DNA from: Piromyces finnis finn
Taxonomy: Eukaryota; Fungi; Neocallimastigomycota
Assembly (NCBI GenBank): GCA_002104945.1
Contig: MCFH01000052.1
Span: 62,001-126,000 of the forward strand
Direction: 5' to 3'
DNA length: 64,000 nucleotides
Of this stretch, positions 18,601-57,269 are shown one piece after another; the stretch's first letter is position 1, and each line of letters opens with the position of its first letter. A program made the position numbers and the translations under genes. Under the pieces are notes generated by a model. That model had not been told where the DNA came from and searched no databases. It worked only from the letters and a program-made list of their open reading frames with translations.

Positions 18601-21183
18601 ATGAAAAGAAGTGAGAAAAAACCTCATCAATCAAAAATTGAAGTTGAAGTTTTAAAAATAAACAATAAAAAAACACAAATGGAAGGAAATTATAACATTA
18701 AAAGAAAAGGTGTCATTGAAACAGAAGATTTTAAAGTAAATTCGCCTCGTCATGTTATAAAACAACAGTTTGAATCTAATGGTTGGTCTATATCATTATC
18801 TACAGTAGCTATAGCTTTAGCAAGTTGTGGTATAGGATCAGCAGTAGCAGCATGTCTTCCATCAATAAATACATATGAATCAAGTGGAAACTATTATTCA
18901 TCAAAACCAATACCAATGACAATGAAGGCCGATGAATTATATATTCGATGTAATAATGCTGTTTTTAAAGGTTCAAAAATTCGTTCTCGTTTATTAGATA
19001 TGATTGTTACAGAAAACCTAACTATTGAATCACTACTCCATGAAATTAAATCGGAATCACATTCATCATCTTTTGGAATTGATATAGGGGCAATCTATAG
19101 TGTATTGAACCCTCCTAAACCATCAAATGGTATTCAATCTCAAGGTGCACCTAATGATAATATTTTCCAAAAGCTTAATGTTATACCATCTTTCCGCTCT
19201 GTTGACGAAAAAGCAATATCAAAAAAGCTTGATGATCTAGCAGAATTAATTGGTGAAGAAAAGTTTTATTTAACTGTAGGTAAAGTATTAAAAAATAAAG
19301 GATCTTTAGTAGGATTACTACCCGATGGATTGGCTGTAAAAAAAACAAATGATCATAATGAAAATGAACATATTGAAGCAGGGGAAATTATAAATGAAAG
19401 TGTAAATGAATATGAAGATCATGAAAGACATGTAGTAAACCCATCCCTTAGTGAATTTTTTTCCATGATGAGTCAAATAGATGAATATAAAAAACTCCAG
19501 AGAGATATAGATATTCATAATATGATTAAAGATATCAATAAAGGATCAAAAGAGGAATTTTTTAAAAGAAAGGATATAAAAAAATTAATTAATGAAAGGA
19601 ATAAATATATCACTATTATGAAGACTCTTAGGGAAAAAGATAAACAAATAAGGGATGAATTTAAAAAAGATGGTAAAAATGAAAAATCATTATATAAAAA
19701 TTTCGAACAAGAAAAACGAATTATTAGAAAGAATGCAATAGATGTTAGAGATCAATTAGAAAAGGAAATTAATAAACTTTTATCAGAAAATGATTTTAAT
19801 GATGAAACAAAGCAATTTTTAATGAGCATATTAATACCATTAAATTCTGAAATTATGTACTCGTCTTTGGATAGTATAGTTAAAAATATATCAATATATG
19901 ATAATAAGAATAAAAAAGAAAATCAAAAATCGACTATCAATGAAAATAATGAAAAAAAATTAAATAATGGAAAATCTGGTGTAAAGGGAAAAAAGCCTAT
20001 GGTAAATGATGATAATAATAATAATGACTTTAACAAAAATAAGAATTTAACAAATTACGCCGAAATAAATAATATAAATATTACTAATGATTACAATGAT
20101 AAATCTAAATTAAATACTGAAAATAATATTAATACAAATTCAGATAATTCAAAAAATGAAACATCTTCAACCTCATTAAACAACACAGACACAAATAGAA
20201 TTCCCACATTTTCTGAAAATTACGAAAATATCAAAAAAAATTTCGATATAATAATCGATAATCCAAAATTAGCAGCTTCAATTGCATACAATGAATTAAA
20301 AGAACTTATTATTGAAACAGTAAATAATGAAAATATCCATGCTTTCTTTAAACATATTGATATGGTACCGGGAGCAGTAAAAGAAATAATTAAAGATGAA
20401 ATAATCTCTACTTGTAAATGTATTAAAATATGTATTACTAATTATGATAAAATTCCAAATGCTATTAAGGATATATATTATGATTATATGAAAGATGGCC
20501 CAATAGAAGGTTCTCTTTGTATATTTATTGATTTAGTATCTTATGGTAAAGAAAGAGGAATAATCTCTAAAAATAGCATATCAAATGTTATTAAATCTAA
20601 ACCAAAAAAAGTCATAAAATCTCAAAATAATATGTCCTTAAAATCTGTAAATGATAACAACTTACTAAATAAAGAGTTCAATATGGCAACAAATGACAAC
20701 AATTCATCTAAATATTACAAAGCATTCAATGATAATGGAAGTAAAGGAAACCTGATATTTTTAGATAATTCAATAAAAAATTCATCTATAAAATCTCAAA
20801 ATAATATGTCCTTAAAATCTGTAAATGATAACAACTTACTAAATAAAGAGTTCAATATGGCAACAAATGACAACAATTCATCTAAATATTACAAAGCATT
20901 CAATGATAATGGAAGTAAAGGAAACCTGATATTTTTAGATAATTCAATAAAAAATTCATCTATAAAATCTCAAAATAATATATCCTTAAATGAGTATCTA
21001 CCATCAGAACCAAGTAGTTTAAGTGATTTAGTATTCCATCCGAAATACTTAAAAGACATTATTAATAAGCCAGAAACATTTTTTAAAATAAAAAGTAAAG
21101 CAGAATGTACAACTTATATCCTCCATGCAATATATAGTAGTGATGAAAATAAAAAGAACAATAAAAATGACAAATACGAATAA
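12661..21183 (+). CDS. Filamentous-haemagglutinin/CdiA(TpsA)-like beta-helical repeat protein, 2840 aa, intronless, no signal peptide
   Basis: Many xxNxGxI/L repeats (LLNYGHL, IFNIGTI, FINYGNI, FLNKGTI, GINSGLL, IINRGLL, FINKGIV, FKNEHGRI, FDNSFGIL, LKNECGLM) resemble FHA-1. A downstream region resembles FHA-2/haemagglutinin repeats (GILFKGTEISAN, GNIIQEGTDMEAN, FKGSKIRS...ENLTIESL...SHSSSFGIDIG, LTVGKVLKNKGSLVG). Low-complexity acidic N-terminus and helical C-terminus. Confidence 0.7.
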   Translation: MHKNLDITKRILKEKIKIIEKRELQNKKKNRAFGNYEFNNSYLSSNADDSSMSLKSLYSTNSNDTLINDNNDNDINLKDEINNTILEDISETSDSDIFSDSNESNVSFVSNKSNITNNKNMESNSNINVNEYNEFNSYLNKSNDVLDEESFKVLDDSESIDTSDTYINEDYDKLILFSDIFNFMVLQPEYIIKIEKNAIFNEETNEKLDRFSVRVQKLIDRDYTEIENQFISPFMDDTELSCLSNLREIMEDITAEITIPNDQKKSTLNTNEITSSNISSETENEEHIKKIKTKISRGFCLTIPGFGYLIISHNGDVVVNNEIIINSMRIISPSHVIIKNIKSEIIEIEASSLSFLDNHSFEINTLEFKGNQNDPLLSHILCGLFIKEKTNIVINNLFIKKGLLLNYGHLTIKENNNLDEGYIFNIGTINFKENTHIIKDIHYMYNGVNGKIISDNNVIFGIHKFINYGNIKIKEIGFSSTGSFLNKGTIETTKCFELRLLGKGINSGLLNGSSGKIIIKGEDFNHLEGKIIVSKIHFQTLRTQLNSTVRGQEIHLQGEVITSGEIHFQYGIIEGYFVNTSEKIKFEKKLELRGKHSEIHNHNKIFADLIVSTAETGIINRGLLTAKNLIVEPKKHIQLQCLMPLLKKINVNASSKLLIAFGSYTPKLKSIINFGDITIYSNLSKLSHIENSDTGNIYLENEKAFNSIYQLSDIHGHIAIKGSLPKLKYLYLNNGALLTLLENSNLPLVKKVNLEGKSCLLIKSNVNLPCLNYLKVNEGSECVLEKDVIAEKIKNIYNNGYISCSIPLLNLRALINRKDSNFFFLNKAFIKGRIFNNDDLESITINPNLKNYLNHEIAIFNEGNIYVDITSSHINISGDYIGAENSVFRLENGFISFMNKFINKGIVYSPELLHYNIGLTTTIRKENGQSISEFFNKQKSIHYSSFNSSPEFKDNTINLGQNVAENGIIFTLECKNSKIDKSFEPIINGKNKELIIISKYDLNFNSNIEWNTDLYMKIPDYESKYELKLRSLFLDTGSFSNSNNISTQNGTSIISESFKNEHGRIESFGDVSICANRKFQNTGGGSIQKNIPEHIHYYTCTTEKKKLCYGNGGRGFFKRLFHSTSSEKYYYKVSTKIESHNKVIYRDIYDIQLEKAGVITSGKNLTINCNNFDNSFGILNASKKLNIHSFNELKNECGLMYSGNEAYLQGKSLNNGYKKYSEKFEGIDINEPIRESLPVLYQQWVQSGHWKGTGGFFGKVFGGKKWVDTSHYENRTRNENLVVGYKPLDTYSTSSEYPGYIFSKGDININVDSDPSYIGTIVSGENINFKGNLQKIANYKDRGLMIAKGDVNMEMNNALHQQFAIQANNIFINLTEDLVIQGIVKPMVIQNEKGESEAVQMVNLKKFANWMGFLSDKHNFLKYDQEINTLTNYVSISREDWEEEYLTYKTSDAGFIGGAPNIKYFMPTIQEKMLTQLLQFILTPIYGREILLNENLKDELTQRGAMIVDALLSNKLLPHSNKKITKHLKNKQVLENKPVLLYGKSHQSSTNIEKNNMKKNIPLYDPYLITNTISQIVNKIIAQKKMKIKTKGNLDFRPCNLNFEAKELSVESEKKIRFLGEYKYGHNNYTRTGVEKVSLNFNGDFEVSGKEGILFKGTEISANNFIRKSKEGNIQEKAMPLDQNVKYINSNTVSVTQDSVTSSFTAKNSIKTTALKGNIIQEGTDMEANNIIFEAKNHIWSPVYQDQLHYAYEKKGYAKTEIKVPKDGGIYSKGTITFKSKDTSLSGIQIFSKKVSNPADGKFSIHPSYIYQNSESHYKTNSLFGSSSRDVIEKKELVKPSVVMVDYFESKGQGLCEFESVVLKALDALIEKDFVEKTAYDKIDTYIHESSSGFFAPKIKHDPIFDTLQNIKSVVNLGSSATLGDIVPSTFTTVGSIAKAINDIKVMSNLDMFKDPFTQMAKVIMSRYVSNIGFGSHEMTMKRSEKKPHQSKIEVEVLKINNKKTQMEGNYNIKRKGVIETEDFKVNSPRHVIKQQFESNGWSISLSTVAIALASCGIGSAVAACLPSINTYESSGNYYSSKPIPMTMKADELYIRCNNAVFKGSKIRSRLLDMIVTENLTIESLLHEIKSESHSSSFGIDIGAIYSVLNPPKPSNGIQSQGAPNDNIFQKLNVIPSFRSVDEKAISKKLDDLAELIGEEKFYLTVGKVLKNKGSLVGLLPDGLAVKKTNDHNENEHIEAGEIINESVNEYEDHERHVVNPSLSEFFSMMSQIDEYKKLQRDIDIHNMIKDINKGSKEEFFKRKDIKKLINERNKYITIMKTLREKDKQIRDEFKKDGKNEKSLYKNFEQEKRIIRKNAIDVRDQLEKEINKLLSENDFNDETKQFLMSILIPLNSEIMYSSLDSIVKNISIYDNKNKKENQKSTINENNEKKLNNGKSGVKGKKPMVNDDNNNNDFNKNKNLTNYAEINNINITNDYNDKSKLNTENNINTNSDNSKNETSSTSLNNTDTNRIPTFSENYENIKKNFDIIIDNPKLAASIAYNELKELIIETVNNENIHAFFKHIDMVPGAVKEIIKDEIISTCKCIKICITNYDKIPNAIKDIYYDYMKDGPIEGSLCIFIDLVSYGKERGIISKNSISNVIKSKPKKVIKSQNNMSLKSVNDNNLLNKEFNMATNDNNSSKYYKAFNDNGSKGNLIFLDNSIKNSSIKSQNNMSLKSVNDNNLLNKEFNMATNDNNSSKYYKAFNDNGSKGNLIFLDNSIKNSSIKSQNNISLNEYLPSEPSSLSDLVFHPKYLKDIINKPETFFKIKSKAECTTYILHAIYSSDENKKNNKNDKYE
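20614..20990 (+). repeat. In-frame 174-bp (58-aa) tandem duplication, about 2.2 copies, near the C-terminus of the FHA-like gene
   Basis: ATAAAATCTCAAAATAATAT... starts at 20614, 20788 and 20962; the two full copies read as identical. Confidence 0.95.
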
Positions 21184-21468: not shown

Positions 21469-21776
21469 CCACTAAAATCGATGATGTAACCAAAATATTC
21501 TATTATTATTTTATTATTCATATACTTAAAAGAAAATTCATTTAATATTTATTAAACCATGTCAATTACTTCTCCAAAATACAAAAATTAAGCTATTTTT
21601 AAACTTTATTTAATTTTAATAAATATTATTTAATAATTTATTTATTCATAATTATTCATAATTAATTCATCAAAAAATTAAATAACTTTATAATTGAGAT
21701 AATTAGGTAGAATTTAAATAAATATTAAAATAGTTAAAAATAGCATTTAAAAATATTTTTCTTTTTAGTATAAAAG
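21469..21776 (+). promoter_or_regulatory. Conserved upstream module of the secreted-peptide family, copy 1
   Basis: CCACTAAAATC(GA)TGATGTAACCAAAA ... CCATGTCAATTACTTCTCCAAAATACAAAA ... TATAAAAG (21769). It begins 484 bp before the ATG at 21953. A regulatory role is inferred from position and conservation. Confidence 0.6.
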
Positions 21777-21952
21777 AAGAAAGAATTTTCCTGAAATTGA
21801 TTATATCATTGAATATTATTTATTCATCAATTCATCAATTATTGAAATATCTATCCCACTGCTTATTTAGTAAAAAAAAAAGAAAGTTTTAAACTTTTTT
21901 TTCTTTTATATAATAGTATTAATTTTTTTTTTAAAAAAAAAAATAAAACAAA

Positions 21953-22132
21953 ATGAAACTTAACTTTGCATTTATCGGAATCTTCTTAGTTTCTGCATTA
22001 GCCTTCACGAATGCAATGGAAATTCCAAACAACGCTAATCAAAAGCGTGATTGGGGTCTTTTTGAAACTAAAACAAGAGTTTCAACAACATCAACAACAG
22101 TAGCTACTACTACACATCCAAGAGGAAGATAA
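21953..22132 (+). CDS. Small secreted peptide precursor, 59 aa (signal peptide, pro-region, KR, DWGLFET, Thr-rich tail)
   Basis: Hand translation: MKLNFAFIGIFLVSALAFTNAMEIPNNANQKRDWGLFETKTRVSTTSTTVATTTHPRGR*. It falls below the 60-aa ORF-track cutoff. Identical copy at 47865 and paralog at 49231-49491. Confidence 0.82.
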   Translation: MKLNFAFIGIFLVSALAFTNAMEIPNNANQKRDWGLFETKTRVSTTSTTVATTTHPRGR

Positions 22133-22894
22133 GGTATAAGAATTTCTTGCTACCAGCCTAAATATCTAAATACCTTAATGAGTAGATTGATTAATATTCA
22201 ACTATTTAAAATATTTAAAATAGTAATCAATCTTTTGTATTCTCATTTTTAATTAATACTTTATACCCAAATTATATTATTAAAAAATTGATAATTACAT
22301 TTGATTTGCTCAATGTATTAATTATAATTCTAATTGTAATTTATTATTAAAATAAATAAAAAAAAATAAATATTAAAATATTAAAATAAATATAAATTAT
22401 TTAATTGTGTATGTGTGAATTGCATTTATTATTTTTATATCAATTGAATTAAATCACAAAGTATTGTTACTTTTACTTTTACTATTTAAAAGTAATTTAA
22501 AAATAAAAATTAAAAGTTTTATAATACAAAAGGGTAGTTTTATATTTTTTTTTATATAACATTATCTATCTTTTATATCAATTAATTTTATATTTTATAA
22601 AAAATTAATTATATTATATTATTATATTATATTATATTATATTATATTATATTATATTATAGTATATTGTCATTGTCAACCTTTTTATTATTCTTCATTA
22701 AAGAATGTTCAATTGAAATATTATATCTAATTGAAATATTCGATATAATATTTAATTATAATTGGCAGTCTTTTTTTTTCCCTGTTGCTAAAAATACGTT
22801 TATTAATTTAATATTGGAATTTAAATGTAATAGTAAATGTAATAGTAATAGTAATATTTATAACTTAATTTGAATGTGTTAATTTTGTAAATAA

Positions 22895-23160
22895 CCACTA
22901 AAATCAGTGAGTAACCAAAACATCAATTATTATTTTATTATCCTATACTTAAAAAAGAAATTCATTTAATATTTATTATACCATGTCCATTACTTCTCCA
23001 AAATACAAAAATTAGGCTATTTTTAAACTTTTTTAATTTTATTAATTAATTAACCAAAAAAAAAAAAAATTAAATTATTTTATAAATAGGTAAAATTTAA
23101 ATAAATATTAAAATAGTTAAAAATAGCTCAACTATTTTACTTCTTCTTTTAATATAAAAG
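22895..23160 (+). promoter_or_regulatory. Conserved upstream module, copy 2
   Basis: CCACTAAAATCAGTGAGTAACCAAAA at 22895, the TTACTTCTCCAAAATA box, and TATAAAAG at 23153. It begins 431 bp before the ATG at 23326. Confidence 0.6.
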
Positions 23161-23325
23161 AAACGAAATTTTTCAATAAATTTATATAACATTGAATTTT
23201 ATTTATTCAATAATTTTAAAATATCTAATATTTTAAAAAAAACAATTATTTAGAAACCAGAAAGTTTATAAAACTACTTTATTTTATTTTATTAATTTTC
23301 TTTTTAAAGAAAAATTAAAAATAAA

Positions 23326-23940
23326 ATGAAATTTAATTCTGCTTTAATTAGTATTCTCTTTGCATTAGCTTGTAATGCAAATGAAATCCAAAATGAAATT
23401 CAAAATGATGAACAACAAAATCCTGGATTGGAACCTATCGATTATTTAAATCCAATTTTAACACCACCAGTAACTACTGAAATTTTCGAAAATCCAAAGC
23501 TAAGACCAAAACCAAAGGGTGTTTTTGGATCTATTGAAGATCCAGAAAACGAACAACCAGGCTCAAGATTAAGACCAAAACCAAAGGGTGTTTTTGGATC
23601 TATTGAAGATCCAGAAAACGAACAACCAAGCTCAAGATTAAGACCAAAACCAAAAGGTATTTTTGGATCTATTGAAGATCCAGAAAACGAACAACCAGGC
23701 TCAAGATTAAGACCAAAACCAAAAGGTATTTTTGGATCTATTGAAGATCCAGAAAACGAACAACCAGGCTCAAGATTAAGACCAAAACCAAAAGGTATTT
23801 TTGGATCTACTGAAGATCCAGAAAACGAACAACAACAAGAATCAAGACTTAAACCAAAACCAAAAAGAAGTTATAGAGGTGGAAAACCAAAACCAAAAAG
23901 AGGTTACGGAGCTGGAAAACCAAAACCAAAACCAAAATAA
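23326..23940 (+). CDS. Secreted repeat protein or peptide precursor, 204 aa, with five 23-aa RLRPKPKG(V/I)FGSIEDPENEQPGS repeats and a KPKPKR-containing tail
   Basis: Hydrophobic leader MKFNSALISILFALACNA, 69-bp coding repeats, and tail KPKPKR-SYRGG-KPKPKR-GYGAG-KPKPKPK. Confidence 0.85.
   Translation: MKFNSALISILFALACNANEIQNEIQNDEQQNPGLEPIDYLNPILTPPVTTEIFENPKLRPKPKGVFGSIEDPENEQPGSRLRPKPKGVFGSIEDPENEQPSSRLRPKPKGIFGSIEDPENEQPGSRLRPKPKGIFGSIEDPENEQPGSRLRPKPKGIFGSTEDPENEQQQESRLKPKPKRSYRGGKPKPKRGYGAGKPKPKPK
23497..23865 (+). repeat. Coding tandem repeat, 69-bp unit, five copies plus a partial
   Basis: GTTTTTGGATC recurs at 23521 and 23590, giving a 69-bp period. Confidence 0.95.
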
Positions 23941-24553
23941 AAATATATAATTATTACCGAAACAAAATTCCTTTCCTAAAATAAATGAATTGGCTTTTGT
24001 TTTTGTCTTTAACTAATATATTATCTAATAACCCTCTCTATTATTTTTTTTATATATACTTATTTTTAATTATTTATTTATACCAAAATTGTGTTATAAT
24101 AATACAATGATTTACTCAATGTATTATAATAATGTAATTTATTATTAAAATAAATAAAATAAAAATTAATATTTTACAAAATTGCGTTATGGAGTGTATT
24201 TTACTTATTAAATTTTTTTTTTAAAAAAAAAAACTTAAAATTGAGTATTTAATATATTCTCATTAGATTTAAATTTAAAATTATGATTAATTATTGTAGG
24301 TAGTAGTAGTAGTAATGTTAAATTTTATAGCAATAAAATTTAACATTAATGTTAGATAGATAGTTTATATAGGTTTATCATATTATTATAAATAATTTAA
24401 TATTTATTTTGTAAAATGTTGATGAAATCATACACAATAAATATTAAAGGATATTAAAAAATAATTTTTTTCTAATTATATAACAATTTTTTTTTTAAAA
24501 AAAAGTCTTACATTATTTTTTTATTATTATCTATCTCTATCGGCGGTAGTATG

Positions 24554-24813
24554 ACTAGAATAGTTTCAATGTTGTTTATTTTTGTTTGTTTGTTTGTTTG
24601 TTTTGTTAATTTGTCTATAATTACTTTGAAGATTTAATAAAATTACTAGAATAGTTTCAATGTTGTTCATTTTTGTTTGTTTGTTTTGTTAATTTGTCTA
24701 TATTACTTTGAAGATTTAATAAAATTACTAGAATAGTTTCAATGTTGTTTATTTTTGTTTGTTTGTTTGTTTTGTTAATTTGTCTATATTACTTTGAAGG
24801 TTTAATAAAATTA
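24554..24813. repeat. About 82-91-bp tandem repeat, three copies, overlapping the stop codon of the ankyrin gene
   Basis: ACTAGAATAGTTTCAATGTTG starts at 24554, 24645 and 24727. Unit length varies through (TTTG)n. Confidence 0.9.
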
Positions 24814-27800
24814 CTTATTCCAATTTTATCGTTTAAATCTGAAATATTATCTGTTGCTTCGGACACATTATTCATAATATTGCATAGGGTTAATTCACTA
24901 ATTTTAGATTTGATAATAGCTTCAACATCATGATGTTCAAATTTGTTCGCTAAATCCTTTGCAGTTTTCCCTTTCAAATTTTCATCTTCATTAATAGAAT
25001 TCTTTGTAGTACTTTCTAAATCAGCTCCACCATTCACTAAATCTTTAACAACATCCGTGTATCCTTTATAACTAGCCCAATGAAGTGCTGTCCATCCATA
25101 TTCATCAACGTAGTCCAAGGAAATATCATTTGAACGAATCATATTTGAAGCAACATATAAATTTTCCTTCTTTATTTCATCCAAAATGGCATTAGAGTCT
25201 GAGATAAGTTCATGGGTTTGACTATGGTGCCTTTCTAGCAAAGATAAAATAAAGGTATCCTTAGTTTTTTTAGCAAGATCAAATGGGGTATGACGATAAT
25301 TTGTTTTAATCTCCAAGTCAGGTTGATATTCTAAAAGAAGTTTAACAAAGGATGGAGAGCGAAAATTGACAGCCATATGAATGGGAGTCCAACCTAAACT
25401 ATTGGTTGCATTAATATTGGCTTTATTATCTAATAAAATTTGAGCAATTTTCCTATTATTATTACTACAGGCTAGGTGTAAGGCATTTTGATGCTTATTA
25501 TTCGTACTTTCTAGCTTGGCTTGATGCTCTACTAAAATACGAACAATATCATCTTGTCCATTTTCACTAGCTATTAAAAGTGGAGTATTTCCACAATGAT
25601 TTTTAAACTCAATATTAGCACCATAATGAATCAAGAGTTGTACAAAATGAATATGACCGTATTCACAAGCTATATGGAGTGGGGTATTACCATCAGCATC
25701 CTCAGTGTCAATATCAATGGTATTTAGTTTAAGAAGAGCATTTGCCAAAGAATATAAATTGTTACGAGCAATGTAGTGTAATAGGGTGGAATCTTGAGCA
25801 CTACGTGCATTAATATCAATTTTCCCAATATTTAATAATAATTTTATTAAACGTAAATCATTATTTTTCACAGCAATTCGTAATAGCCCGTATTCCAAAT
25901 ACGGATTACTATCCTTATCAATCTCCTGTTTAAATAAAAGATTTACAATATGATAGGCATTTGAATAGCATGCTATTTCCAAAGCTGTTAAACCATTTTG
26001 ATTGATTGTATTGACCTTTGCACCTTCCTTTAAAAGAAATTGAACAATTTCTGTATTACAATTACGACAAGCAAAATATAATGGGGTGAAACCATTACTC
26101 TTAATATTTACATCAAAACCTTGTTCTATCAAAAACATCAATACCTCTAATTGATTGTAGTAGGCAGCAATATGAAGAAGTGACCAATGATCCTCTGTGC
26201 TTTTAAAAATATCTTCATCCCCACTATGAACGAATTGTTCTACCATTGCCATATCACCATATTTAACAGCCGTTTGAAAATCAGTCCAATGATCCTGTTG
26301 ACCTCGATCAAAATCATAATTAAAGTTGCGGCTATCGGACATGGCCTTTTTAGTTAACTTTTTGATTTCACGAAATTCTTTTCTTTTAGCAAGGCTATAG
26401 GCAGTGTCACCATTTTCATCTATTGCATGGACATTAACACCTTCTTTTATTAAAAGTTCAACAACCGGTAAGTAACCATATTCACTTGCATACATAAGTG
26501 CCGTTTTACCAGTTTTGTCACTTGCTTCTATATCAGCACCATGCTTTATTAAATAATTTACAATGTTAGTGTAGCCATTTTGGCAAGCAATGATTAAAGC
26601 TGTCATATCTTTTTCACTTTTAAAATGAAGATTGGCACCCTCTTGAATCAAATATTTAATAATCATTTCATTACCCGTCACACAAGAGAGCATTAAAGCA
26701 GACCATCCTTTTTTATTGAGGATATCTATGTCAGCATCATGCTCTACTAAATATTCAATAACTAAATTAATATTTTTACTACAAGCATACATTAATGCCG
26801 TCCAACCATTACTATCCTTTAGATTTGGATTAGCCTTATGTTGAATTAAATATCGTATGATATCAAATTGATTGTGTTCTGTGGCATACATTAAAGCCGT
26901 ACGACCTAAATTATCTTGTACATCTACATTCATATCATGATAGATTAAAAGTTCAATGATAGGCATATACCCGTTCACACAAGAATCCATAAAAATATTA
27001 TAATTGTTGGTTGGACCGTTTTTAATTCCTTCCTTAATTAAATAGTCGAAAAATGAAATACGATCATTTTTAATAATGGTATTAAAATTAGACCAATCGT
27101 TATTCTCCTTATTACTGGAGGCTAGATGGTTAATAATTAAATTTGTAATTTCCTGACTTGTTTCTAAAAAAACATTTTGATGTTTGGTATTAATTAAATT
27201 AAATTCGGCCTTTTGATTGATTAAATATTCTACCACACCATAGTGTTGATATTTTATAGCAAACATTAATGGAGTATAGCCACTCACGGTAGTAACATTA
27301 ATATCTGCCTGGTGTTCCACTAAATATTGAACCATGTCAAGATTTCCATTTTGGCTTGCAAGAACTAACGGGGTGATACCATTTTTATCTTTTACATTGA
27401 TATCAGCACCACATTCAATGAATAATTTAACAATATTAAGATGATTGGATGTTGTGGCAATATGCAATGCCGTACTACCTTCACAATTCTTAATATTAAT
27501 ATTTGCTTTCTTTGCAATAATTAAATTAGCAATGACTTCATTATCCGTTTCGGAAGCGTACATTAAAGCACTACATAAATTATTGTCAAGACTATTAACA
27601 TCTGCCCCTTTAGAAATGAGATATCTTACTATAGTTTCATGGCCTTCATGGGAAGCACACATTAAAGGGGTACGTTTTTCTAAATCTCTGTAATTCACGT
27701 CCATTTGGCATTGACCAACTAAATATTTTACGATATCAACACGGCCAGAATATGCCGCCAACATCACTGCATTTTGACCTTCACTATTGGTATCAAAAAT

Positions 27801-35955: not shown

Positions 35956-38008
35956 ATGGCGGATATTAATGATTTTAATAAATACCGAAGAATGTCAGTT
36001 GAGTATTCTTCATCTAGTAAAGCGATGGATATGCTCAATGTTGGAGAAACCCCTCAACAACAATTAAGAAGAGGTTCAATGCCTCATATTCTTTATGGTG
36101 GAAATAAAAGTATTTGGAATAGTGATGGTAAGTTTTTTTTTTTAATAAACATATATCTATGGATAAAAAACTTGTATATTAAAGAAGTAAAGTGAAAAAA
36201 AAGATAGTGAGGTGAAAGAGAGTAGTAAAAAAAGAGAATAGCAATTCGATATTATCTTTATCCAACAACTACATGATGGAGTGGTAAAAAAAAACAAAAT
36301 TTAGTACGATAACACCAAAATGAAATCAAAAAAAAAGAGAAATGACCACTAACCCATTTTTTAAAAAAATAGAGTTTATTAAATAAATCAAAGATGTCTC
36401 ATTCCACCACTCCATAATCCTTTATTCACTAAACTATGGAAGCAAAAGTCATGGATGATGATGGAATTAAAAATTTTAAACTCTTAAAAATTAATGATTT
36501 AAAATGGTTAATTTAATAAATTTAATTTAATGAATAGTTAAATTAGCCAATCATCTTTTAGAAAATTTAATTAAATTACAAATTTGGAAATATAATTAAT
36601 TTTAAAAAATTGGAAAAAAAAAAAGTCAAAAATTTATAATTAGTCATCATTGACCAACATCAATATTTCATATGTAGGTTGGGTTAATAACTTATTATTC
36701 CATATAATATAATATAATATAATATTTTTATGATATAGATGACCAATGGAAAGCTGTTGGAAGTCCACCAAGAAGACCTTCTTTATCTGGAACTCTTGGT
36801 TACACCGTCACTAATAATAATACTATTCTTTCCCAAAATCTTAGAAACAATAATGGAGTACCATCAATTATCAAGGAAGATACCTCTGGTAGGAAAATTA
36901 AAAAAATAAATCATGTTTACAAAATATTTTTGATAATTTATATATATACTAATTAAAATTTTTTTTAAATTAAAAAAAAAAAAATGCTATTACACATTCT
37001 ACACCTATATAGAAAATGGTATGTCTTCCTTATTAACTCAAAATAATTCAAATAATGGAGTAAATATTCCACAAGGTTTATCTGGTCAATGGGATTCTTT
37101 GGCTAGTTCTTGGTCTGGTGGTTCTTCTATTTGGAAGAGTAGTTATCCAAATTCTGCTGGTTTAAATCAAACATCTTCCTTATTAAATAGTTCTTCATCT
37201 GGTAGAAATGACCCATTTCCATCTTTTTCTAATTCTTCTGGAATTCAACCACCAGCTCCACGTCAATATAGAAGTTTTTCAGTTTCTGTTGGTGCTTTAG
37301 GACCCGTGAGTGATAATTTTGGAAATTATTCATCTTCTAATGCAGCTGCAGCTGCAGCCGCTTTAACCTCTCAATTCCCATTATCTGAAAAGGATGAAAT
37401 TGAAAATGAAAGATTAAGTCACTTAAAATTAAATGACAGTAGAATTGATGAAACAGACGAAGTTAATGGCGATTTGGATATTTTAAGTGAATTAATGAAT
37501 AAATCTTCTGGATTAGGCGGATTAGATAGTCTTGGAAATACAAAAATTAGATCTCGTTCAAAATCTTCATCAGACACCTTTGGTATCATGAGTAATTATA
37601 ATATGAATAATACAGTACAAAATCATCAGAGATTCCATTCCCAAAAGAATTTCAATAACTATGTTATGGGTGGTGGTAGTAAGAATAATTTATCTTCAGC
37701 ATTCCTCAATAACAGTAGTATGGATATATTCTCTAGTGTTTTAAATAATAATAATAATAACAATAATACTTCAAATACAACAACAAGTACTGATTTACAA
37801 TCCAAGAGTTCCCTTTTATCCCCATTAATCACTAATAATAATAATAATGATAGTGCCTCCATTATCACCACATCTTCTATGACTCCTACTTCTCAATTAA
37901 ATAGTAACTTTTTACTTTCCGCAAATGATACAACTGCAATGAATACTGCATCATTATTAACAACTCCAACCACATCCTCTACAATTTCATCTACTAACCT
38001 TATTGCCC

Positions 38009-38043
<35 letters not shown>

Positions 38044-40128
38044 AATATGAAAAAATTGATGTTTTCAAATGTGAATATACCATCCACATTAGCTGATTCC
38101 AGTATGATGAATATGACTATGAATGACATGGCTCAAGCTAATGTAAACAATACAAATGGTGGCATGAATAATGTAAATATGCTTTCTAACCAATGGACTA
38201 ATAATACCGGTATTACTAGTACCACTTCATCGCCATTCCGCAATACCACTGAAAACCAATCTCTTGCTCATAAACGTTCCAACACTCAACCAGCCTATCC
38301 TATGTGGAATAGTAATAATAATAGTAGTAATAGTGCAACGGCGTCTAACGGCCAATTAAATAGCACCGAATCATCCTTTAATTCCCAAAATAATTTCATG
38401 CCAGGTATGAACTTGCCAAACCAACAATCAAGTCAACAAACTATGGGACAAATGAATGGTAATGTTATGCAAGGAAATGATTTCATGAACTCTAACAACA
38501 ACCCTAGCAATAACAGCGGTAACAACAATAATGGTAGCAACAACAACAACAACGGCAACAACAGCAATAATAACAATATTAATAGAATGCCTCAAGTTCA
38601 AAATTTTTCACAACAAAGAAACAACCGTTTCTATAACACCATGTTTAATGGAAACCAAAATGGTATGAATCAACCAATGTATCAACCCACCTTTGACCAA
38701 AACTTTACTGGCCATAATGACATGGACTTTATGATGCAACAACAATTTAGCATGAGAAGAAATAGTGATATGAGTATGAATACTATGATGCCTGGTATGT
38801 ATCAAAATATGCCAATGGGCATGAACATGGGTATGAACATGGGCATGAATAATAATGGTATGAATAATATGATGATGCAACATTATAACCGTGGCCATAA
38901 CATGATGATGATGAATGGTGACAACATGTATATAAATGATATTAATGACTACTTTGAAAACACAGAATATAGAACTCGCGCTTGGGTTGAAGCAGGTAAA
39001 AATTTACATCAAATGCAACAACAAAATGTCTACCATTGGCCATTATATGTTATTGAATTTAAGGCAGGTCGTACCGATTATTTCTATGTTCCAGAAAATA
39101 GTGGACTCACCATTAAGATTGGTGATTTAGTTATTGTTGAAGCTGATCGTGGTAAAGATCTTGGTAAAGTTATTGTTAATAATATTAAGAATTTGGCACA
39201 ACTTGTAGCTTATCATGCTGAACGTGGTAACCCACGTCATTTAATTATTGATGATGACATGAATAATAACAATGTTCCAAACATTCCAATTACATGGCCA
39301 AAGGGTCAAAATGGTGAAGGCGGCAGCGATAGTGACACTGGAAAATCTGAAACCAAAAAATCAGATGATACCACAGCAGATGCTGAAAAAGAAGAAACCG
39401 AAAAGAAGGAAGAAGGTGCTACAGGTGCCACAGACGGCAAGGATACCGCAAAGGAAGGTAATACCGAAGAGGAAAAGAAAGAAAAGAGTGGAGAAGAAGC
39501 CTTACAATTTCCAAAGGATATTCATCCAAAACGTATTTATCGTATGGCTCAACCAGCCGAAGTTAATATGTTGGTTCAAAAGAATACAGATGAAAACAGT
39601 TCTATGCTTCTTTGTCAGCAAAAGGTTAGACAAAGAAATATGCCAATGGAAGTTGTTGATGCTGAATATCAATGGGATAGAAGAAAGTTAACCTTTTATT
39701 TCGTTTCCGAAAGACGTATTGATTTCCGTGAATTAGTACGTGATCTTTTTAAGGTTTACAAAACTCGTATTTGGATGTGTGCTGTTTCCTCCTTGACCAC
39801 AATGAAGGCCTATCAAGCCTTTAACATTAATATTGTTAGTCCAAGTAATATGAATGAACAAACCATTGCACAACTTCAAAATATGACCATTGAAGATAAG
39901 AAGGAAGAAGAAAGCGATGCCTTTGGCGAATCTTTTATGGAAAAGAAATCACAAGGTGAAAGCGGTGATGCATTAAAGAAGAGTAGTGATGAAATCAAGG
40001 AAGAAATATCAAACCAAGTTGTAGCAGATATTCCATCAGAAATTAAGGATGTTACTACAAAGGTTCCAGTTCAAACACCAACTCCACCTCCATCTCTTCC
40101 ACCATCACAAGTTCAAACTCCAAAATAA
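35956..40128 (+). CDS. PSP1: PSP1 C-terminal-domain protein, 3 exons (35956-36127, 36739-36888, 37013-40128), 1145 aa, with an N/Q/M-rich low-complexity region
   Basis: Domain motifs YVIEFKAGRTDYFY, GDLVIVEADRGKDLGKV and MEVVDAEYQWDRRKLTFYF...IDFRELVRDLFKVYKTRIWM. GT-AG introns (gtaagt...atag, gtagga...atag), both phase 1, join into one open frame. Confidence 0.85.
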
Positions 40129-41952: not shown

Positions 41953-44900
41953 ATGTCAGTCCTTTATATTAAAGATAAGAATTATATCAGACGTGGTACC
42001 CGGTCTTATGGTATCCCCTTAGATGATATTCGCTCCTTCTTTATCCGTGGTATTCGATCATGGTCAGTAAATATGCTATGGGAAAAACTCGAGGTTATTC
42101 TAGAAGATAAATTTAATTCAGTTATTAGTGTTAAATATTTTCAGACTTTCAATGATCACTTTTTCTTAGTCAAGGTTCATGGTTCATCGAAAGATTGTAT
42201 TAAAATCTTACACATGTTAAAGAAGAAACTTTCAGTTACCTCAATTTCCTTTTCAGCTCGTAGTAGAAGGAACCACAAATACACTTTTTTCACACTCAAA
42301 CGTAAAATTTTAGTTTCTAATAAACATCAACTTTCAATTCAACAATCACTTCAACAATCAGTTCAACAATCAGTTCAACAATCTCATCAACAATCAGTTC
42401 AACAATCTCATCAACAATCCGATCTTCAACAAGATCTTCAACAGGATCTTCAACAAGTTTCCCATCATGAAAATATTCCAGATCTACAGCAAACACAATT
42501 TCAATCTCAACATTCAACAATTAATTCTAATAGCTCTATCAACTCTGCTAACAGTTCAATAGTTGATAGTTCTTCAGTATCACAGCCATCTAGTAATAGT
42601 TCTACTTATTCCTCTGATGCATCATCCATTAATAATGATGACCTTGATAATAATAATAATAGCAACGATTCTTCCTCATCCAACAAGCCTGATAACTTTT
42701 CTTTTTGTCTTAGTTGGAACACCAATGGGTGGAATCATGAAAAGAGAGATAGTATTAGCTATTTCACAGCTATTTTCAAACCATTATTCTTATGTTTCCA
42801 AGAAACTGGTAATGGTTCTGGTTCGAATACAGATTATCCTTGTCGTGTTACTTTGCGAAACTATAGACACTTTTTCAAGAAAGCTGACGAATCAGTTCCT
42901 GGAATGAGAGGTTTATATTTAGGTTTTCACAATTCGTGTCAAGCCTCACTTGAAAACTTCTCTGGAAAGTATATTATTTCTATTTATACTTTTAGTCTTT
43001 GGAATAGATTCAAATGCTCGATTGGAAATGTTTATATGCCTCATAGTCATCACAACATCTATGTTGATCATGCAAAGTTAGAAGTTCGCTTGTGGTTACA
43101 AACTCATTCATCCCATCCATCGATTCTTGTTGGTGATTTTAATATGTCTAAAGTAAAATTATCCAACTGGTTATCAACTAATAGATTAGGAGATTGGGAG
43201 ATTCTTCTGCTTAGAGGGTCTACTATCTCTTGGACTCGAGGTGAACAATCTTCCGACATTGACCATGCTCTTATCAATTTGAAGATGAAAGATCTTATTC
43301 ACTCAGGATCATTTATAAATAATTTTTATCCTGTATCAGACCATAAGCCACTTTTTATTAATGGTAAAATTATTCCTATGGAAGATTTTTCTAATGACTT
43401 TAATGTTCCTAAGAAAATTATGAAATGGAATAGATTAAAATGTATTGAGGAAAAGGAATCTATTCTCAGTCATAATAAATTCCAAATTCTTTCAGCAAAA
43501 TTCAACGATCCTAATGTTTCTACAGATGAACTTTCCAAAGAGTTTACTTCAACTGCTTTTTCAATTGCAGACGAGCTCAGTATTACCTCAGCAAATAATG
43601 TTATAAAGTCTTCATTTCATATTTCACAACAAATTTTTAATCTCCAAAAAATCAAAATGAAGTTGTATAAGAGATTTAAAAAAGAAAGAATTTATGATAT
43701 AGATGAATTTATTAAAAGAATTAAAATCTACCGTAAGCTCATTGATTACATCCACAAAAGATGTAATGAATTTAGGAAACAAGAATATCTTCATTGGATT
43801 AAAACAGGATGTGAGTATATGAAGAGTCATAATCCTAAGAAGGCCTGGAAATGGATCAAGAAAACTGCAAAAATTGGAAAAGATTCTTTCTTTATTGCTC
43901 AACCAATTAAAAACAAAAATGGAGAATTAGTTGTTGCTACGGAAGAACAACTAGATGTGTGGCATGATCATTTCGAAAATCTTGCATCAGATCCAAGTGG
44001 TGTAAGTCTTGATTTAGAGCATTGGTATGAAGAACCAATGAATAAACGTTTTTCACTTCCTATGCTTGATGAATGGGATATCAACCAAGATATTAGTATT
44101 GATGAAGTCAAGTCAGCTATCCTCTCTACTCCAAATTATAAAGCATCAGGTCCGGATGGTATTCCAATTGAATTTTACAAAGCATTAATTCCATCAAGTA
44201 ATGATTCTAATAATGCTACAGATAATAATTCTTCCGGTAATACTACTTCAGATAATGATGCTCATGGTTTAAATTTTATTCTTAAATTATTCAACCGTAT
44301 TTGGGATGGAGACTTTCCCAACTCATGGAATGAATCCAGTATTGTTTCTATTCCTAAGAAGGGAGATTTGACAGATTGTGATAACTATCGAGGTATATCA
44401 CTTATCAATAATGGTATTAAGTTGATTTCCAAAATTGTCACCACTAGAATTTCAGAATATGGTTTAAAGAATAATTTCATTAGACCTGAACAATTTGGTT
44501 TTCGAAAAAAGGAAGAAAGTATCAGTCTTTTCATTTCAATCCAAGAAATATGCCGTAGACGTCAATTAGATAATAAAGAGACATATTTGGCCTTTTTAGA
44601 TCTCAGGAAAGCATACGATTCAGTCCCAATCGGTAATATTCTCCATAAATTAGATTGTTTAGGAATCCGAGGTAAGAGTTTACAATTCATCAAAAATTTA
44701 TATTTAACATCTAAGGCTAATGTCAAATTAGATGGACAATTCTCGAAATCTTTTGATGTGAAGAAAGGAGTCCGTCAAGGATGCCCTCTTTCTCCTATTC
44801 TCTTTAATCTCTTTATTAATGATATATTTAAAGAGTGTGAAGATCTCGGAGTCAGTTTAGGTGACACTCGATGCTGTGGTGGACTTTTTGCAGATGATAT

Positions 44901-47379: not shown

Positions 47380-48945
47380 CCACTAAAATCAGTGATGTAA
47401 CCAAAATATTCTATTCTTATTTTATTATCCTATACTTAAAAAAGAAAATTCATTTAATATTTATTAAACCATGTCAATTACTTCTCCAAAATACAAAAAT
47501 TAAGCTATTTTTAAACTTTATTTAATTTTAATAAATATTATTTAATAATTTATTTATTCATAATTATTCATAATTAATTCATCAAAAAATTAAATAACTT
47601 TATAATTGAGATAATTAGGTAGAATTTAAATAAATATAAAAATAGTTAAAAATAGCATTTAAAAATATTTTTCTTTTTAGTATAAAAGAAGAAAGAATTT
47701 TCCTGAAATTGATTATATCATTGAATATTATTTATTCATCAATTCATCAATTATTGAAATATCTATCCCACTGCTTATTTAGTAAAAAAAAAAGAAAGTT
47801 TTAAACTTTTTTTTCTTTTATATAATAGTATTAATTTTTTTTTTAAAAAAAAAAATAAAACAAAATGAAACTTAACTTTGCATTTATCGGAATCTTCTTA
47901 GTTTCTGCATTAGCCTTCACGAATGCAATGGAAATTCCAAACAACGCTAATCAAAAGCGTGATTGGGGTCTTTTTGAAACTAAAACAAGAGTTTCAACAA
48001 CATCAACAACAGTAGCTACTACTACACATCCAAGAGGAAGATAAGGTATAAGAATTTCTTGCTACCAGCCTAAATATCTAAATACCTTAATGAGTAGATT
48101 GATTAATATTCAACTATTTAAAATATTTAAAATAGTAATCAATCTTTTGTATTCTCATTTTTAATTAATACTTTATACCCAAATTATATTATTAAAAAAT
48201 TGATAATTACATTTGATTTGCTCAATGTATTAATTATAATTCTAATTGTAATTTATTATTAAAATAAATAAAAAAAAATAAATATTAAAATATTAAAATA
48301 AATATAAATTATTTAATTGTGTATGTGTGAATTGCATTTATTATTTTTATATCAATTGAATTAAATCACAAAGTATTGTTACTTTTACTTTTACTATTTA
48401 AAAGTAATTTAAAAATAAAAATTAAAAGTTTTATAATACAAAAGGGTAGTTTTATATTTTTTTTTATATAACATTATCTATCTTTTATATCAATTAATTT
48501 TATATTTTATAAAAAATTAATTATATTATTATATTATATTATATTATATTATATTATATTATATTATATTATATTATATTATATTATAGTATATTGTCAT
48601 TGTCAACCTTTTTATTATTCTTCATTAAAGAATGTTCAATTGAAATATTATATCTAATTGAAATATTCGATATAATATTTAATTATAATTGGCAGTCTTT
48701 TTTTTTTCCCTGTTGCTAAAAATACGTTTATTAATTTAATATTGGAATTTAAATGTAATAGTAAATGTAATAGTAATAGTAATATTTATAACTTAATTTG
48801 AATGTGTTAATTTTGTAAATAACCACTAAAATCAGTGAGTAACCAAAACATCTATTATTATTTTATTATCCTATGTCCATTACTTCTCCAAAATACAAAA
48901 ATTAAGCTATTTTTAAACTTTTTTTAATTTTATTAAATAATAAGT
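47380..48945 (+). repeat. Segmental duplication, copy B (module, peptide gene, 3' flank, second module)
   Basis: Matches 21469-23045. The second module copy at 48823 has no peptide gene downstream on the + strand. Confidence 0.92.
47865..48044 (+). CDS. Small secreted peptide precursor, 59 aa, identical to 21953-22132
   Basis: Same 180-nt sequence; ATG at 47865, TAA at 48042-48044. Confidence 0.82.
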   Translation: MKLNFAFIGIFLVSALAFTNAMEIPNNANQKRDWGLFETKTRVSTTSTTVATTTHPRGR

Positions 48946-49230
48946 TTTAATCTATTTATTATTCATAATTAACCAAAAAAGTAAATCATTTTATGATTAA
49001 AAGGAATTTAAATAAATATTACAATTAACAATAAACTTATTTTAGTTTTTTATTTTTATTTTTATTTTTTTTTTTACTTTTTTTTATTTTATTTTAATAA
49101 TAAATTACAATAAAAATTAATACATAGGATAAATTCAAATGTTTTATCATCAATTCTTTAATAATATAATAGTTGGTTGGATAGTTTGGTATAAAAAAAT
49201 TAAAAAAGTAAAATTAATATTATAGATAAG

Positions 49231-49491
49231 TTAATGTGGTTTTTTAACTTTAAATTCTGTTTTAGCTTTAGTTGTAGTTGTTTTAGCTGTAGTTGTTTTA
49301 GTTGTAGTTGTTTTAATTGTAGTTGTAGTTGTAGTTGTTTTAGTTGTAGTTGTAATTGTGGTTGTTGGAATTCCTGTTGTAGTTTCAAAAAGACCCCAAT
49401 CACGCTTTTGATTGTTTGGAATTTCCATTGCATTCGTTAAGGCTAATGTAGAAACTAATAAGATTCCGATAAAAGCAAAGTTAAGTTTCAT
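49231..49491 (-). CDS. Small secreted peptide precursor, 86 aa, paralog with KR-DWGLFET and an expanded Thr/Lys-rich tail
   Basis: MKLNFAFIGILLVSTLALTNAMEIPNNQKRDWGLFETTTGIP... shares leader, KR and DWGLFET with the 59-aa genes. Confidence 0.85.
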   Translation of the reverse strand: MKLNFAFIGILLVSTLALTNAMEIPNNQKRDWGLFETTTGIPTTTITTTTKTTTTTTTIKTTTTKTTTAKTTTTKAKTEFKVKKPH

Positions 49492-49659
49492 TTTGGTTTA
49501 TTTTTTTTTAAAAAATATTATAATATCAATTATTTAATAAAATAAAAAAAGTTTAAAACTTTCTTTTTTTTTTTTAGTAAATAAGCAGTAGATATTTTTA
49601 AAATTGATGAATAAATAAAATTCAATGATTTAATCAATTTCAAGAAAATTTTTTTTTTT

Positions 49660-49953
49660 CTTTTATACCAAAAGAAAGAGTAAAATAGTTTAAAATAGTT
49701 GAACTATTTTAGTATTCATTTAAATTCCTTCTAATTATAAAGTAATTTAATTTTTTGGTTAATTAATTTTGAATAATAAATAGATTAAAACTTATTATTT
49801 AATAAATTTAAAAAAAAAGTTTAAAAAAAGTTTAAAATTGTATTTTGGAGAAGTAATGGACATGGTTTAATAAATATTAAATGAATTTTCTTTTTTTTTA
49901 AGTATAGGATAATAAAATAATAGATGTTTTGGTTACATCACTGATTTTAGTGG
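49660..49953 (-). promoter_or_regulatory. Conserved upstream module, inverted copy serving the 86-aa gene
   Basis: TGGTTACATCACTGATTTTAGTGG at 49930-49953 and TATTTTGGAGAAGTAA at 49841-49856 are reverse complements of the module boxes. It begins 462 bp upstream of the ATG at 49491. Confidence 0.6.
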
Positions 49954-50255: not shown

Positions 50256-51805
50256 TTAAAATATTAAATTTATTTTTTTTATAAAAAAAAAAAAAAAAAA
50301 AAACGGAAAAGAAACATTACAATATATAAAAAAAAAAGTTTATAATTTTTAGTGGTTATTTAAAATGAAACAGTAAAATTATGTAGTGATTTAATTTATT
50401 ATGAAATTGATAAAAAGTAATTGTTAATTAGGAATATATAAAAAAAAAGAAATACTATAATAAATATAAAAATATTACTAAAAATCATCAGAATTTATAA
50501 CTATTTTTAAATATATTAATAAATATCAAGAAAAAGATAGAACTTTTAAATAAAAACTTTTAATTATTATATAAAAGCTATTATATTTTTTGGAATGAAT
50601 GAAAAACAGATTATTGAACTTATTATTAATTATCAAATTAAAATAATTTCCAAGTATCTTTTTTTTTCTTAAAAAAAGTGAAAAAGGGTATATAATGATA
50701 TAGTTATTAAAAAGATTTATATACTTTTTTTTTTAATATATTCGAAATAAAATTATTTTTTATTTTAAAGTATTATCTCTTTTAAATATATATATAGAAT
50801 AATATAAATAAGCGTCGTTTTAAAATAGATCATTTGTTATTAAAATATAAAATACTTTAAGATATAATGTATAATACTTTAATTAAACTTGAAAAACAAT
50901 ATTATTCAATATTTCTTTTTTTTTTTTTTTTTTTTTTTTCAACAACTATATAAAAATATTTTTAAAATTTAATGAACTTTTATTTATTACATTTTATTTT
51001 TGTTTTATTATTAATTGTTATATATATATACATATAAAATGATAAAAAAAAATACTTAAAAATATATTAAATTTGAATGTGTACCTCTTTAAACTTTACT
51101 TTTTTATCACCATCAATATTCAATTTAAATTTTTTTTTTTTTTTTTTTTTAAATTGTAAAATATTTTATTTTATTTCAATTATATATTTATATTTCTTTT
51201 CTTTTTTCTATAATATTACTCACATTTACACTGTTTACTAATATTGCTATTTTTTTTATATGCTTTATACTTTTTTTAAACAATTCTTTAGATGATTTAT
51301 TACTTGTCCTAGATTTTGGAAGGGTTTAGCCAAAAATTCTGGCCAGGGAAAATTTGACCTCTGGTAAAATTTTAACCAGACAAAAACCAGAAATCTTTAA
51401 CTTGTATTTAAAATTTATGGATGATCCATTTTTATTTGATAAAATTTTTTAAATGAATTTTAATAAGAAAGACCAAATTAAGGAAGAAGAACAAACGGAA
51501 ATTATTATTAAATTAAATGATACTTATGATAAATTAGATAAATCAATTCGTTATAAAAGGTGTCATGACAATAATATTAATATAAAACATTTATAAATTC
51601 ATCGTAATGACGAAAAGAAAAAACTATATTCGTTTAATATTATTTAAATTTTAAAAGAATTATTTATTAATCACGATTTTATAAACATTTAATCCATTTA
51701 CATGTATGCATAACACATATATAAATTAATAGGTATTGCATCTTTATCAACATATGATTTATATAAATGTTACGAACTTTTATATATATTTATTAAATAT
51801 ATAAA

Positions 51806-52117: not shown

Positions 52118-52149
52118 AGTGATGAATTTGAATATAATTTGATATTGGA

Positions 52150-52400
52150 TACTTTCAAGAAAGTTTTTCCTTTTTTTTTATACCAAAAGAAAAAGTAAAA
52201 TAGTTTAACAATTTTATTTAAATTTATAAAGCAAGTTAGTTTTTTTTTTGATAAATTAATCATTAGTTAATTATAAATATATAATATATAATTTTTTTTA
52301 AAAAAAAAAAAAAAGTTTAAAAATAGTTTTATTTTCTATTTTGGAGAAGTAATAGACCATCCTAGTTTATTTAATGTTAAATGAATTTTATTTATTTAAA
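52150..52400 (-). other. Degenerate orphan copy of the peptide-family upstream module
   Basis: TATTTTGGAGAAGTAA at 52337-52352 and TTTTATACCAAAAGAAAAAGTAAAATAGTTT near 52170 match the inverted module at 49660-49860. I found no peptide ORF downstream. Confidence 0.55.
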
Positions 52401-53016
52401 CTTGTCTTGTAATATTAAATATTATGGTAAAGGAACAATGTTTATTAATAATATAATAATTATTTATTAATAACTATAATAATAGGAATGTTCATGTTAT
52501 TAAGTTCAAGGTAACAATCAAAAGAGCATCACTATTGAAGGAAAAAAAAAAAAAAAAATAAACTAACAATCGACTAGTGATAATAAATTTTAATTTTGAC
52601 TATACACTTTTAAATATATTTAGTATTAATAACAACTTTTTAACTAAATCTATATTACAATACCTACTTTTATTAATTATTTTATTTTTTAATATATTTT
52701 ATATTTTGATTACCATTATAAAAACAGTTAAATATATATAGTATATAAATGATATGACAATAAAAGTATTGTATTGGGGTAAAGGAAATTCCTTTTTTCC
52801 AAATTATTTTCAAGAGAATATATTTTTATTAGAATGAATGAACAACTTCTTTTATTGATGGAAAGAGAAGGAGTTACCTTTAAAAATAAATGAATAAAAT
52901 AATTTATTTATTCATTCACTTATTTATTTATTTATTCACTTATTTATTTATTTAATTTTATTGTATTTAATTTTATTTTGTATTTTTTGTCTTTATATCT
53001 TTATAAAAAAAAAAAA

Positions 53017-57090: not shown

Positions 57091-57169
57091 TATTTATTTA
57101 TTTAGTTATTTATTTATTTATTTATTTATTTAGTTAGTTAGTTAGTTAGTTAGTTATTTATTTATTTAT

Positions 57170-57224
<55 letters not shown>

Positions 57225-57269
57225 TTTAGTTATTTAGTTATTTAGTTATTTATTTATTTATTTATTTAG

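Follow-up and report, generated by a model that had tools for sequence, protein, structure and literature searches.

Organization of the locus

The DNA analyzed here is a 64,000-nucleotide stretch of the genome of the anaerobic gut fungus Piromyces finnis (C181:62001-126000; hereafter the window), eukaryotic in character and with a GC content of ~15-35%, which belongs to an assembly of 56,455,805 bases in 232 contigs. Spread over ~31 kb of this window are six related units, four of which carry an open reading frame (ORF) for a protein with a predicted signal peptide, preceded by a shared upstream module with an invariant 17-mer and followed by a conserved distal 3' block. We regard it as fairly probable that these units are whole-gene copies forming a young, lineage-specific cluster under birth-and-death turnover, and that they encode orphan secreted proteins and arose through ordinary local gene duplication. 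Their parts, in positions of the window, are as follows:

21469..21952, plus strand: unit 1 upstream region, with the module, the invariant 17-mer, TATAAAAG near 21769 and an A-rich run before the ATG
21953..22132, plus strand: gene A1, 59 aa, with a predicted signal peptide, a pro-piece ending in KR, a DWGLFET core and a Thr-rich tail
22260..22356, plus strand: unit 1 conserved distal 3' block, with AATAAA-type signals
22357..22894, plus strand: spacer with a (TATTA)n microsatellite, copied along with unit 1
22895..23325, plus strand: unit 2 upstream region, with the module, the 17-mer and TATAAAAG
23326..23940, plus strand: gene B, 204 aa, with a predicted signal peptide, an acidic N-terminal part, repeats and a PK-rich basic tail
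24077..24158, plus strand: unit 2 conserved distal 3' block
47380..47864, plus strand: unit 3 upstream region, near-identical to that of unit 1
47865..48044, plus strand: gene A1', identical in sequence to A1
48045..48822, plus strand: unit 3 3' flank and spacer, copied together with the gene
48823..49040, plus strand: unit 4, a truncated module copy without a gene, abutting the 3' end of the inverted unit 5
49080..49197, minus strand: unit 5 conserved distal 3' block
49231..49491, minus strand: gene A2, 86 aa, with the A1 leader and KR-DWGLFET core and an expanded Thr/Lys-rich tail
49492..49953, minus strand: unit 5 upstream region, with the module, the 17-mer and TATAAAAG
52160..52420, minus strand: unit 6, a decayed upstream relic with the 17-mer intact and no gene

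The preliminary description of this DNA spoke of four genes. The four ORFs exist, but only three of them are distinct, namely A1 (59 aa, present twice), A2 (86 aa) and B (204 aa): those at 21953+ and 47865+ are identical and lie within one 1.48-kb segmental duplicate (21469-22946 and 47380-48874; 99.3-99.4% identity), which spans the unit, the spacer and the first ~50 nt of the next unit. The unit part of this duplicate (21469-22355) shows eight differences, six of them concentrated in its first 60 nt (21480-21527 versus 47391-47439), and this clustering suggests the boundary of a gene-conversion tract rather than a simple recent duplication. Two of the six units are dead, the gene being absent from both: the module of unit 4 breaks off after ~200 nt and is followed by the 3' end of the inverted unit 5, and unit 6 persists as an upstream relic. 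Both of these module copies, the truncated one at 48823 and the decayed one near 52388 on the minus strand, are additions to what had been described before.

The repeats around the cluster include a 62-nt minisatellite (~6 copies, 95% identity, 51727-52179), which stands where the gene of unit 6 would be, and an 83-nt tandem repeat (~3 copies, 24551-24814), which lies directly downstream of the 3' block of gene B and overlaps the 3' end of an ankyrin-repeat gene on the opposite strand. Between the two halves of the cluster sits an ORF for a PSP1-domain protein (37021-40128).

Shared parts of the units

The 16-mer module CCACTAAAATCAGTGA occurs in five copies in the window at no more than two mismatches (21469+, 22895+, 47380+, 48823+ and 49953-), as against 0.06 expected in shuffled sequence. 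The distance from the module to the ATG in the four gene-bearing copies measures 484, 431, 485 and 462 bp, which bears out the spacing of 431-485 bp given earlier. In a multiple alignment, the similarity between the units begins sharply at CCACTAAAATC in every one of them, and the upstream regions further share the invariant 17-mer ATTACTTCTCCAAAATA, a TATA box (TATAAAAG) ~170-185 bp before the ATG, and a closing A-rich run ending in AAAATG. All four ORFs open with the leader MK(L/F)N(F/S)A(F/L)I(G/S)I, as had been noted. The 3' flanks are likewise related, as proposed: a distal block of the form TTTATACC...ATGTATTA...TGTAATTTATTATTAAAATAAA is alignable across all gene-bearing units (BLAST E 2e-12, 3e-14 and 1e-8). 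Hence, the shared module, leader and 3' block are real and far beyond what chance would produce.

Predicted products

The N-termini of A1, A2 and B have the features of signal peptides, with a basic start, a hydrophobic core (11-aa Kyte-Doolittle maximum of 2.6-2.75) and small residues at positions -3 and -1; no later hydrophobic stretch follows this core in any of the three. In A1 and A1', cleavage is predicted after TNA and is followed by a short pro-piece ending in KR, whereas in B it is predicted after CNA. That the mature regions differ completely, as was claimed, is correct for the A type as compared with B, but A1 and A2 share the KR-DWGLFET core, with the KR directly preceding DWGLFET in both, and the Thr-rich tail. 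The longer tail of A2 is a repeat expansion of that of A1, and threonine makes up 29 of the 65 residues of A2 that follow the signal peptide.

The body of gene B is made up of in-frame minisatellites, one with a 69-nt period in 5.2 copies (a 23-aa repeat, 95% matches) and one with a 33-nt period in 2.5 copies. The latter forms the PK-rich basic tail, which contains two KR sites (residues 180-181 and 191-192). Each repeat opens with the X-Pro dipeptides RP and KP, and no KR, RR or KK occurs between the repeats. An AlphaFold2 single-sequence model of B, in itself weak evidence, renders the leader alone as helical and the rest as coil (predicted local distance difference test score, pLDDT, of 50-60). 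There is no cysteine in the mature parts of A1, A2 or B. The best reading of these compositions is that both types are Cys-free secreted proteins, the A-type mucin-like and the B-type a disordered polyampholyte.

Coding potential

A1, A2 and B probably represent real, undescribed genes for small secreted proteins, although we term their coding status putative; the preliminary description had proposed as much, and the open frames, the GC contrast, the in-frame indels and the signal-peptide-like N-termini all agree with it. The alternative is that the units are young DNA with little or no function, consisting of proto-genes or decaying copies that yield no stable secreted product and whose ORFs persist solely through the recency of the duplications. 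It would sit well with the finding that two of the six units are already dead and with the lack of relatives, but the ORFs have a GC content of 30-36%, about twice the 14-18% of their flanks. Among 20000 shuffles of the same composition, the frame stayed open in none for the 204 codons of B, in 33 for A2 and in 266 for A1. Further, the frame has survived both a 6-nt in-frame indel between A1 and A2 and the expansion of repeats with periods of 69 and 33 nt, which are multiples of three. The A and B genes also both retain the hydrophobic core and the -3/-1 residues despite ~18% nucleotide divergence and a 3-codon indel. We accordingly consider young DNA without a product unlikely, while ranking it ahead of the other alternatives discussed below.

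Several observations nonetheless weigh against the view of these units as duplicated, functional genes, and most of them would suit young DNA without a product. There is no synonymous excess between A1 and A2, which differ in their first 38 codons by one synonymous and four non-synonymous changes, so that purifying selection on the A proteins is not demonstrated. ATG-initiated ORFs of at least 59 aa arise by chance in AT-rich DNA of this kind (eight in 20.4 kb of non-genic window DNA), and A1 alone is therefore not convincing. None of A1, A2 and B has an exact-sequence record in the set looked up, outside of which records of their own genome possibly lie. An indirect hint in favor of transcription, by contrast, is that four small runs from the same organism (three studies) contain just 15-34% of the words of the 2.76-kb stretch, a share that fits transcript contigs; the RNA nature of these runs is only guessed, and none of the listed runs is recorded as RNA. 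Lastly, the sharp common 5' edge of the units is left unexplained by simple tandem duplication.

Mode of divergence and comparison with peptide precursors

The units of the A and B types are alignable over their 5' ~480 nt, the first ~78 nt of the ORF and the last ~115 nt, whereas for the ORF body and the proximal 3' region the alignment is no better than that of shuffled sequence. Across the flank and leader, the two types have ~83% identity in ungapped columns (BLAST), with the leader alone at 82%; hence, conservation of the leader does not exceed that of the non-coding flank. In the comparison of A1 with A2, the flank is at ~90% and the leader at 95%, a figure that rests on four differences in 78 nt. 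The difference between A and B comes from the replacement of the body by minisatellite repeats and not from many point substitutions. Since flank and leader diverge alike, there is no sign in these data of selection that would keep the leader fixed and at the same time push the mature part apart; a uniform decay of the copied unit combined with one body replacement explains the pattern of similarity.

These results bear on the proposal that the genes encode diversifying secreted bioactive peptides, such as effectors, pheromones or antimicrobials, in which selection preserves the promoter and prepro region and the mature region is hypervariable. The common leader and upstream region combined with unalignable A and B bodies are what such a family would display, and a KR directly before DWGLFET would be a suitable processing site, given that the genome has kexin-like genes with encoded proprotein-convertase P domains. 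The RP and KP that open the repeats of B are of the type removed by STE13-type peptidases (PMC6339444). Against this stand the small size of the set (three distinct genes of two body types, with two of the ORFs representing one recent duplicate), the A versus B leader that is conserved no better than non-coding flank, and an A/B difference that amounts to a replaced minisatellite body. The lack of cysteines in the mature parts and of dibasic sites between the repeats of B also speaks against it, as does the lack of relatives from which diversifying selection could be gauged. We thus judge diversifying bioactive peptides to be quite improbable. A more specific form of this idea, which we deem slightly less probable again, would have kexin release an O-glycosylated DWGLFET product from A and RPKPKG-type peptides from B, the two being co-expressed via a dedicated cis-regulatory module. 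In this joint form, the peptides would serve in zoospore or thallus signalling or act on gut bacteria, and would constitute a new family without relatives that has been caught in the course of diversifying.

The locus was also compared with known precursor families. Conotoxin and amphibian skin-peptide families comprise many paralogues, in which Cys frameworks or amphipathic cores occur and the mature exon undergoes point substitution at an accelerated rate. The locus resembles them in having a common signal region with unlike bodies, which had been taken as their hallmark. That comparison finds no support here: there are three genes of two body types rather than many paralogues, no cysteine or other scaffold, a leader that diverges like the flank with no faster mature region, and a body replaced by a minisatellite.

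Three features define the Kex2-processed repeat proteins (KEPs), namely a signal peptide, repeats, and KEX2 sites (KR, RR, KK) between the repeats (PMC6339444). Like the KEPs and alpha-factor-type precursors, B combines a signal-peptide-like start with at least five near-identical repeats opening with X-Pro, and the A type has a KR directly before its core. Of the KEP features, B has the repeats (5.2 copies, as against the three or more near-identical ones by which KEPs are recognized) but has no KEX2 sites between them, its KR sites being confined to the C-terminal tail; the A type, with its single core, lacks repeats. The suggested kinship with fungal Kex2-processed precursors and with peptides made on ribosomes and modified after translation (RiPPs) is therefore not borne out by B's repeats, nor were tailoring genes found. 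Precursors of the ustiloxin/dikaritin type of RiPP have tailoring genes nearby (UstYa/DUF3328, tyrosinase, methyltransferase). UstYa gave no match in the genome, though the controls of that search also gave none, and no RiPP tailoring enzymes are found among the window ORFs of at least 120 aa, an ORF scan from which multi-exon genes may escape. A survey of anaerobic-fungus natural products records, for other species, nonribosomal peptide synthetases, polyketide synthases and a few genes of bacteriocin-like type, and no family resembling the present one (PMC8106346).

Confinement to the locus and search for relatives

In the 56.46-Mb genome, a 521-nt piece of unit 2, the module, the 17-mer, the DNA pattern of the leader and the A and B proteins found matches in the window only; matches outside it, at 1-3 mismatches, were discounted as low-complexity or chance. 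A scan with module and leader, which had been suggested as a means of enumerating members, thus places all of them in this window. A weak own-genome match of gene B (C161, E 0.012), which lacks a Pfam family, was dropped.

In Pfam, A1 had no match and gene B only weak low-complexity ones. Residues 1-83 of A2 matched PF21827, the Drosophila 'new glue' family, with E 2.2e-5 and 24.6 bits, below the 31-bit gathering cut-off. A2 is like these proteins in combining a signal peptide with a short Thr-rich secreted chain, which makes for a functional analogy to mucin-like adhesives; unlike them, it falls short of the cut-off, its companion A1 has no match, the likeness is compositional, and the family is insect-specific. 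A word-based protein search with A2 and B found nothing, and a search of the ESM Atlas for look-alikes of A2 reached no more than an uninformative score of 0.75.

An exhaustive HMMER search with B returned 15 matches at E<=1e-3. The best are leucine-rich repeat (LRR) proteins of the LRR_8 type (PF13855; E 3.9e-20, 27% identity), a score that sums over non-independent repeats; others are an acidic/basic repeat protein in which RPKP occurs and a satellite-like ORF of 231 aa from an ENA contig of 737 kb. The 24-residue repeat of the LRR proteins and the 23-residue repeat of B share a periodic RL..P.GIF pattern. However, B lacks the LxxLxL core, has no Pfam LRR match at E<=1 and is coil in the AlphaFold2 model, with no solenoid, for which reasons LRR kinship was rejected. 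The 15 matches were likewise not accepted as homologues, the likeness being periodic or compositional. A metagenome scan with the 17-mer, too short a pattern for a collection of that kind, gave 120 chance matches, and BLAST of the units against these loci found nothing beyond ~20-50 nt. The family is thus without demonstrable relatives in the collections searched, which did not cover other anaerobic-fungus genomes at the DNA level.

The confinement of the units largely refutes their being a mobile or retroposed element, for instance a retrocopy mobilized by a long interspersed nuclear element (LINE) and running from the sharp 5' edge to an A-rich tail. Such an element would account for the edge at CCACTAAAATC in all units, for the A-rich 3' end and for a LINE-type reverse transcriptase ORF that ends ~870 bp upstream of unit 3. 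However, all copies lie within 31 kb on one contig, and a genome-wide spread of the module, by which a mobile element would be recognized, was looked for without any copy being found outside the window in 56 Mb. Moreover, the TATA box lies inside the unit, ~180 bp before the ATG, and an A-rich tail is uninformative in DNA of 14% GC. Mobility is thus highly improbable.

Nature of the upstream module

The best-kept part of the unit is its first ~170 nt, which persists even in the relic copies, and in units 1-4 a 10-codon ATG-initiated ORF (MSITSPKYKN) overlaps the invariant 17-mer. It is just as improbable, for all that, that these ~170 nt form the gene of a small non-coding RNA, or else a conserved upstream ORF, with the downstream ORFs being incidental, since unit 2 has no Rfam match, the module has no consensus pairs (0) and a single-sequence fold no better than shuffles (z = +1.57), and the short ORF has a different frame or length in units 5 and 6, where the DNA is nonetheless conserved. 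The first three of these results speak against the module as a structured RNA and, together with the short ORF not being kept, lead us to read it most simply as the promoter region of the copied unit.

Neighboring features

The other ORFs of at least 120 aa in the window encode a giant ATPase-like protein, a CdiA-like protein, an ankyrin-repeat protein, the PSP1-domain protein, a LINE-type reverse transcriptase and one protein of no recognized family:

neighbor in the window: ORF of 3,439 aa
neighbor in the window: CdiA-like ORF, 2,840 aa
24789-28241, minus strand: ankyrin-repeat gene
37021-40128, plus strand: PSP1-domain ORF, 1,035 aa (PSP1 C-terminal domain, E 5e-32)
41953-46512, plus strand: intact LINE-type retrotransposon ORF, 1,519 aa, with an RVT_1 domain and an N-terminal endonuclease-like part
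58297-59796, minus strand: ORF of 499 aa, with a TTG start as listed and no Pfam family at E<=1e-5

A perfect 174-nt tandem duplication (20614-20961) lies within the CdiA-like ORF, in its 3' part, and doubles a 58-residue segment. A long microsatellite array of the (ATTT/AGTT)n type occupies 57007-57420.

Origin and possible function of the cluster

On the reading that we favor, the local duplication of whole genes, a unit of ~0.9-1.3 kb was duplicated locally several times. In this unit, ~430-485 bp of upstream sequence containing a TATA box precede an ORF that starts with a predicted signal peptide, and poly(A)-type signals lie in the 3' region. Later, unit 5 was inverted, unit 4 was truncated and unit 6 decayed, and units 1 and 3 go back to one very recent 1.48-kb duplication or gene conversion. 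The common promoter, leader and 3' flank would then be mainly the residual identity of the copied unit. In the lineage of B, an A-like body may have been replaced, with subsequent in-frame minisatellite expansion.

Judging from their sequences, we predict that the A-type proteins enter the endoplasmic reticulum co-translationally and lose the signal peptide after TNA, whereupon a kexin-like protease could cleave after KR and free a Thr-rich product headed by DWGLFET. The tail of this product is probably O-glycosylated and mucin-like. B, in turn, would leave the cell as a polyampholyte of 186 residues that is Cys-free, intrinsically disordered and rich in proline, glutamate and lysine. These compositions would fit a role in an extracellular coat, in a matrix or in adhesion better than they fit a discrete folded toxin, and we therefore speculate that such a role is likelier than that of a discrete bioactive peptide. 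What the analysis shows is how the units were duplicated, that they are restricted to this locus, that the ORFs bear coding-like signatures and that relatives are lacking in the collections searched; secretion, KR processing and glycosylation are inferred.

Clusters of tandemly duplicated secreted effectors are known from Ustilago maydis, and lineage-specific clusters of small secreted proteins (SSPs) are common in fungi. A lineage-specific, tandemly duplicated SSP cluster is the closest kind to the present locus, which has in common with the Ustilago maydis type the small signal-peptide ORFs without domains or relatives, the local duplicates, and the birth and death of copies. Unlike those clusters, it belongs to a non-pathogenic gut fungus, its products are Cys-free and of low complexity, and it comprises three distinct putative genes.

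The locus is undescribed and the observation real, while the process underlying it is ordinary. It thus adds modestly to what is known of lineage-specific SSP clusters, and it establishes no new class of peptide signal or toxin; its importance would grow if transcripts and processed peptides exist, or if related fungi hold a larger, diversifying family. If expressed, the products would be secreted orphans from an anaerobic gut fungus; beyond cellulosomes, little is known about the extracellular biology of these fungi. How secreted proteins can originate is also illustrated here, with a copied cassette of promoter and signal peptide gaining a body via minisatellite expansion.

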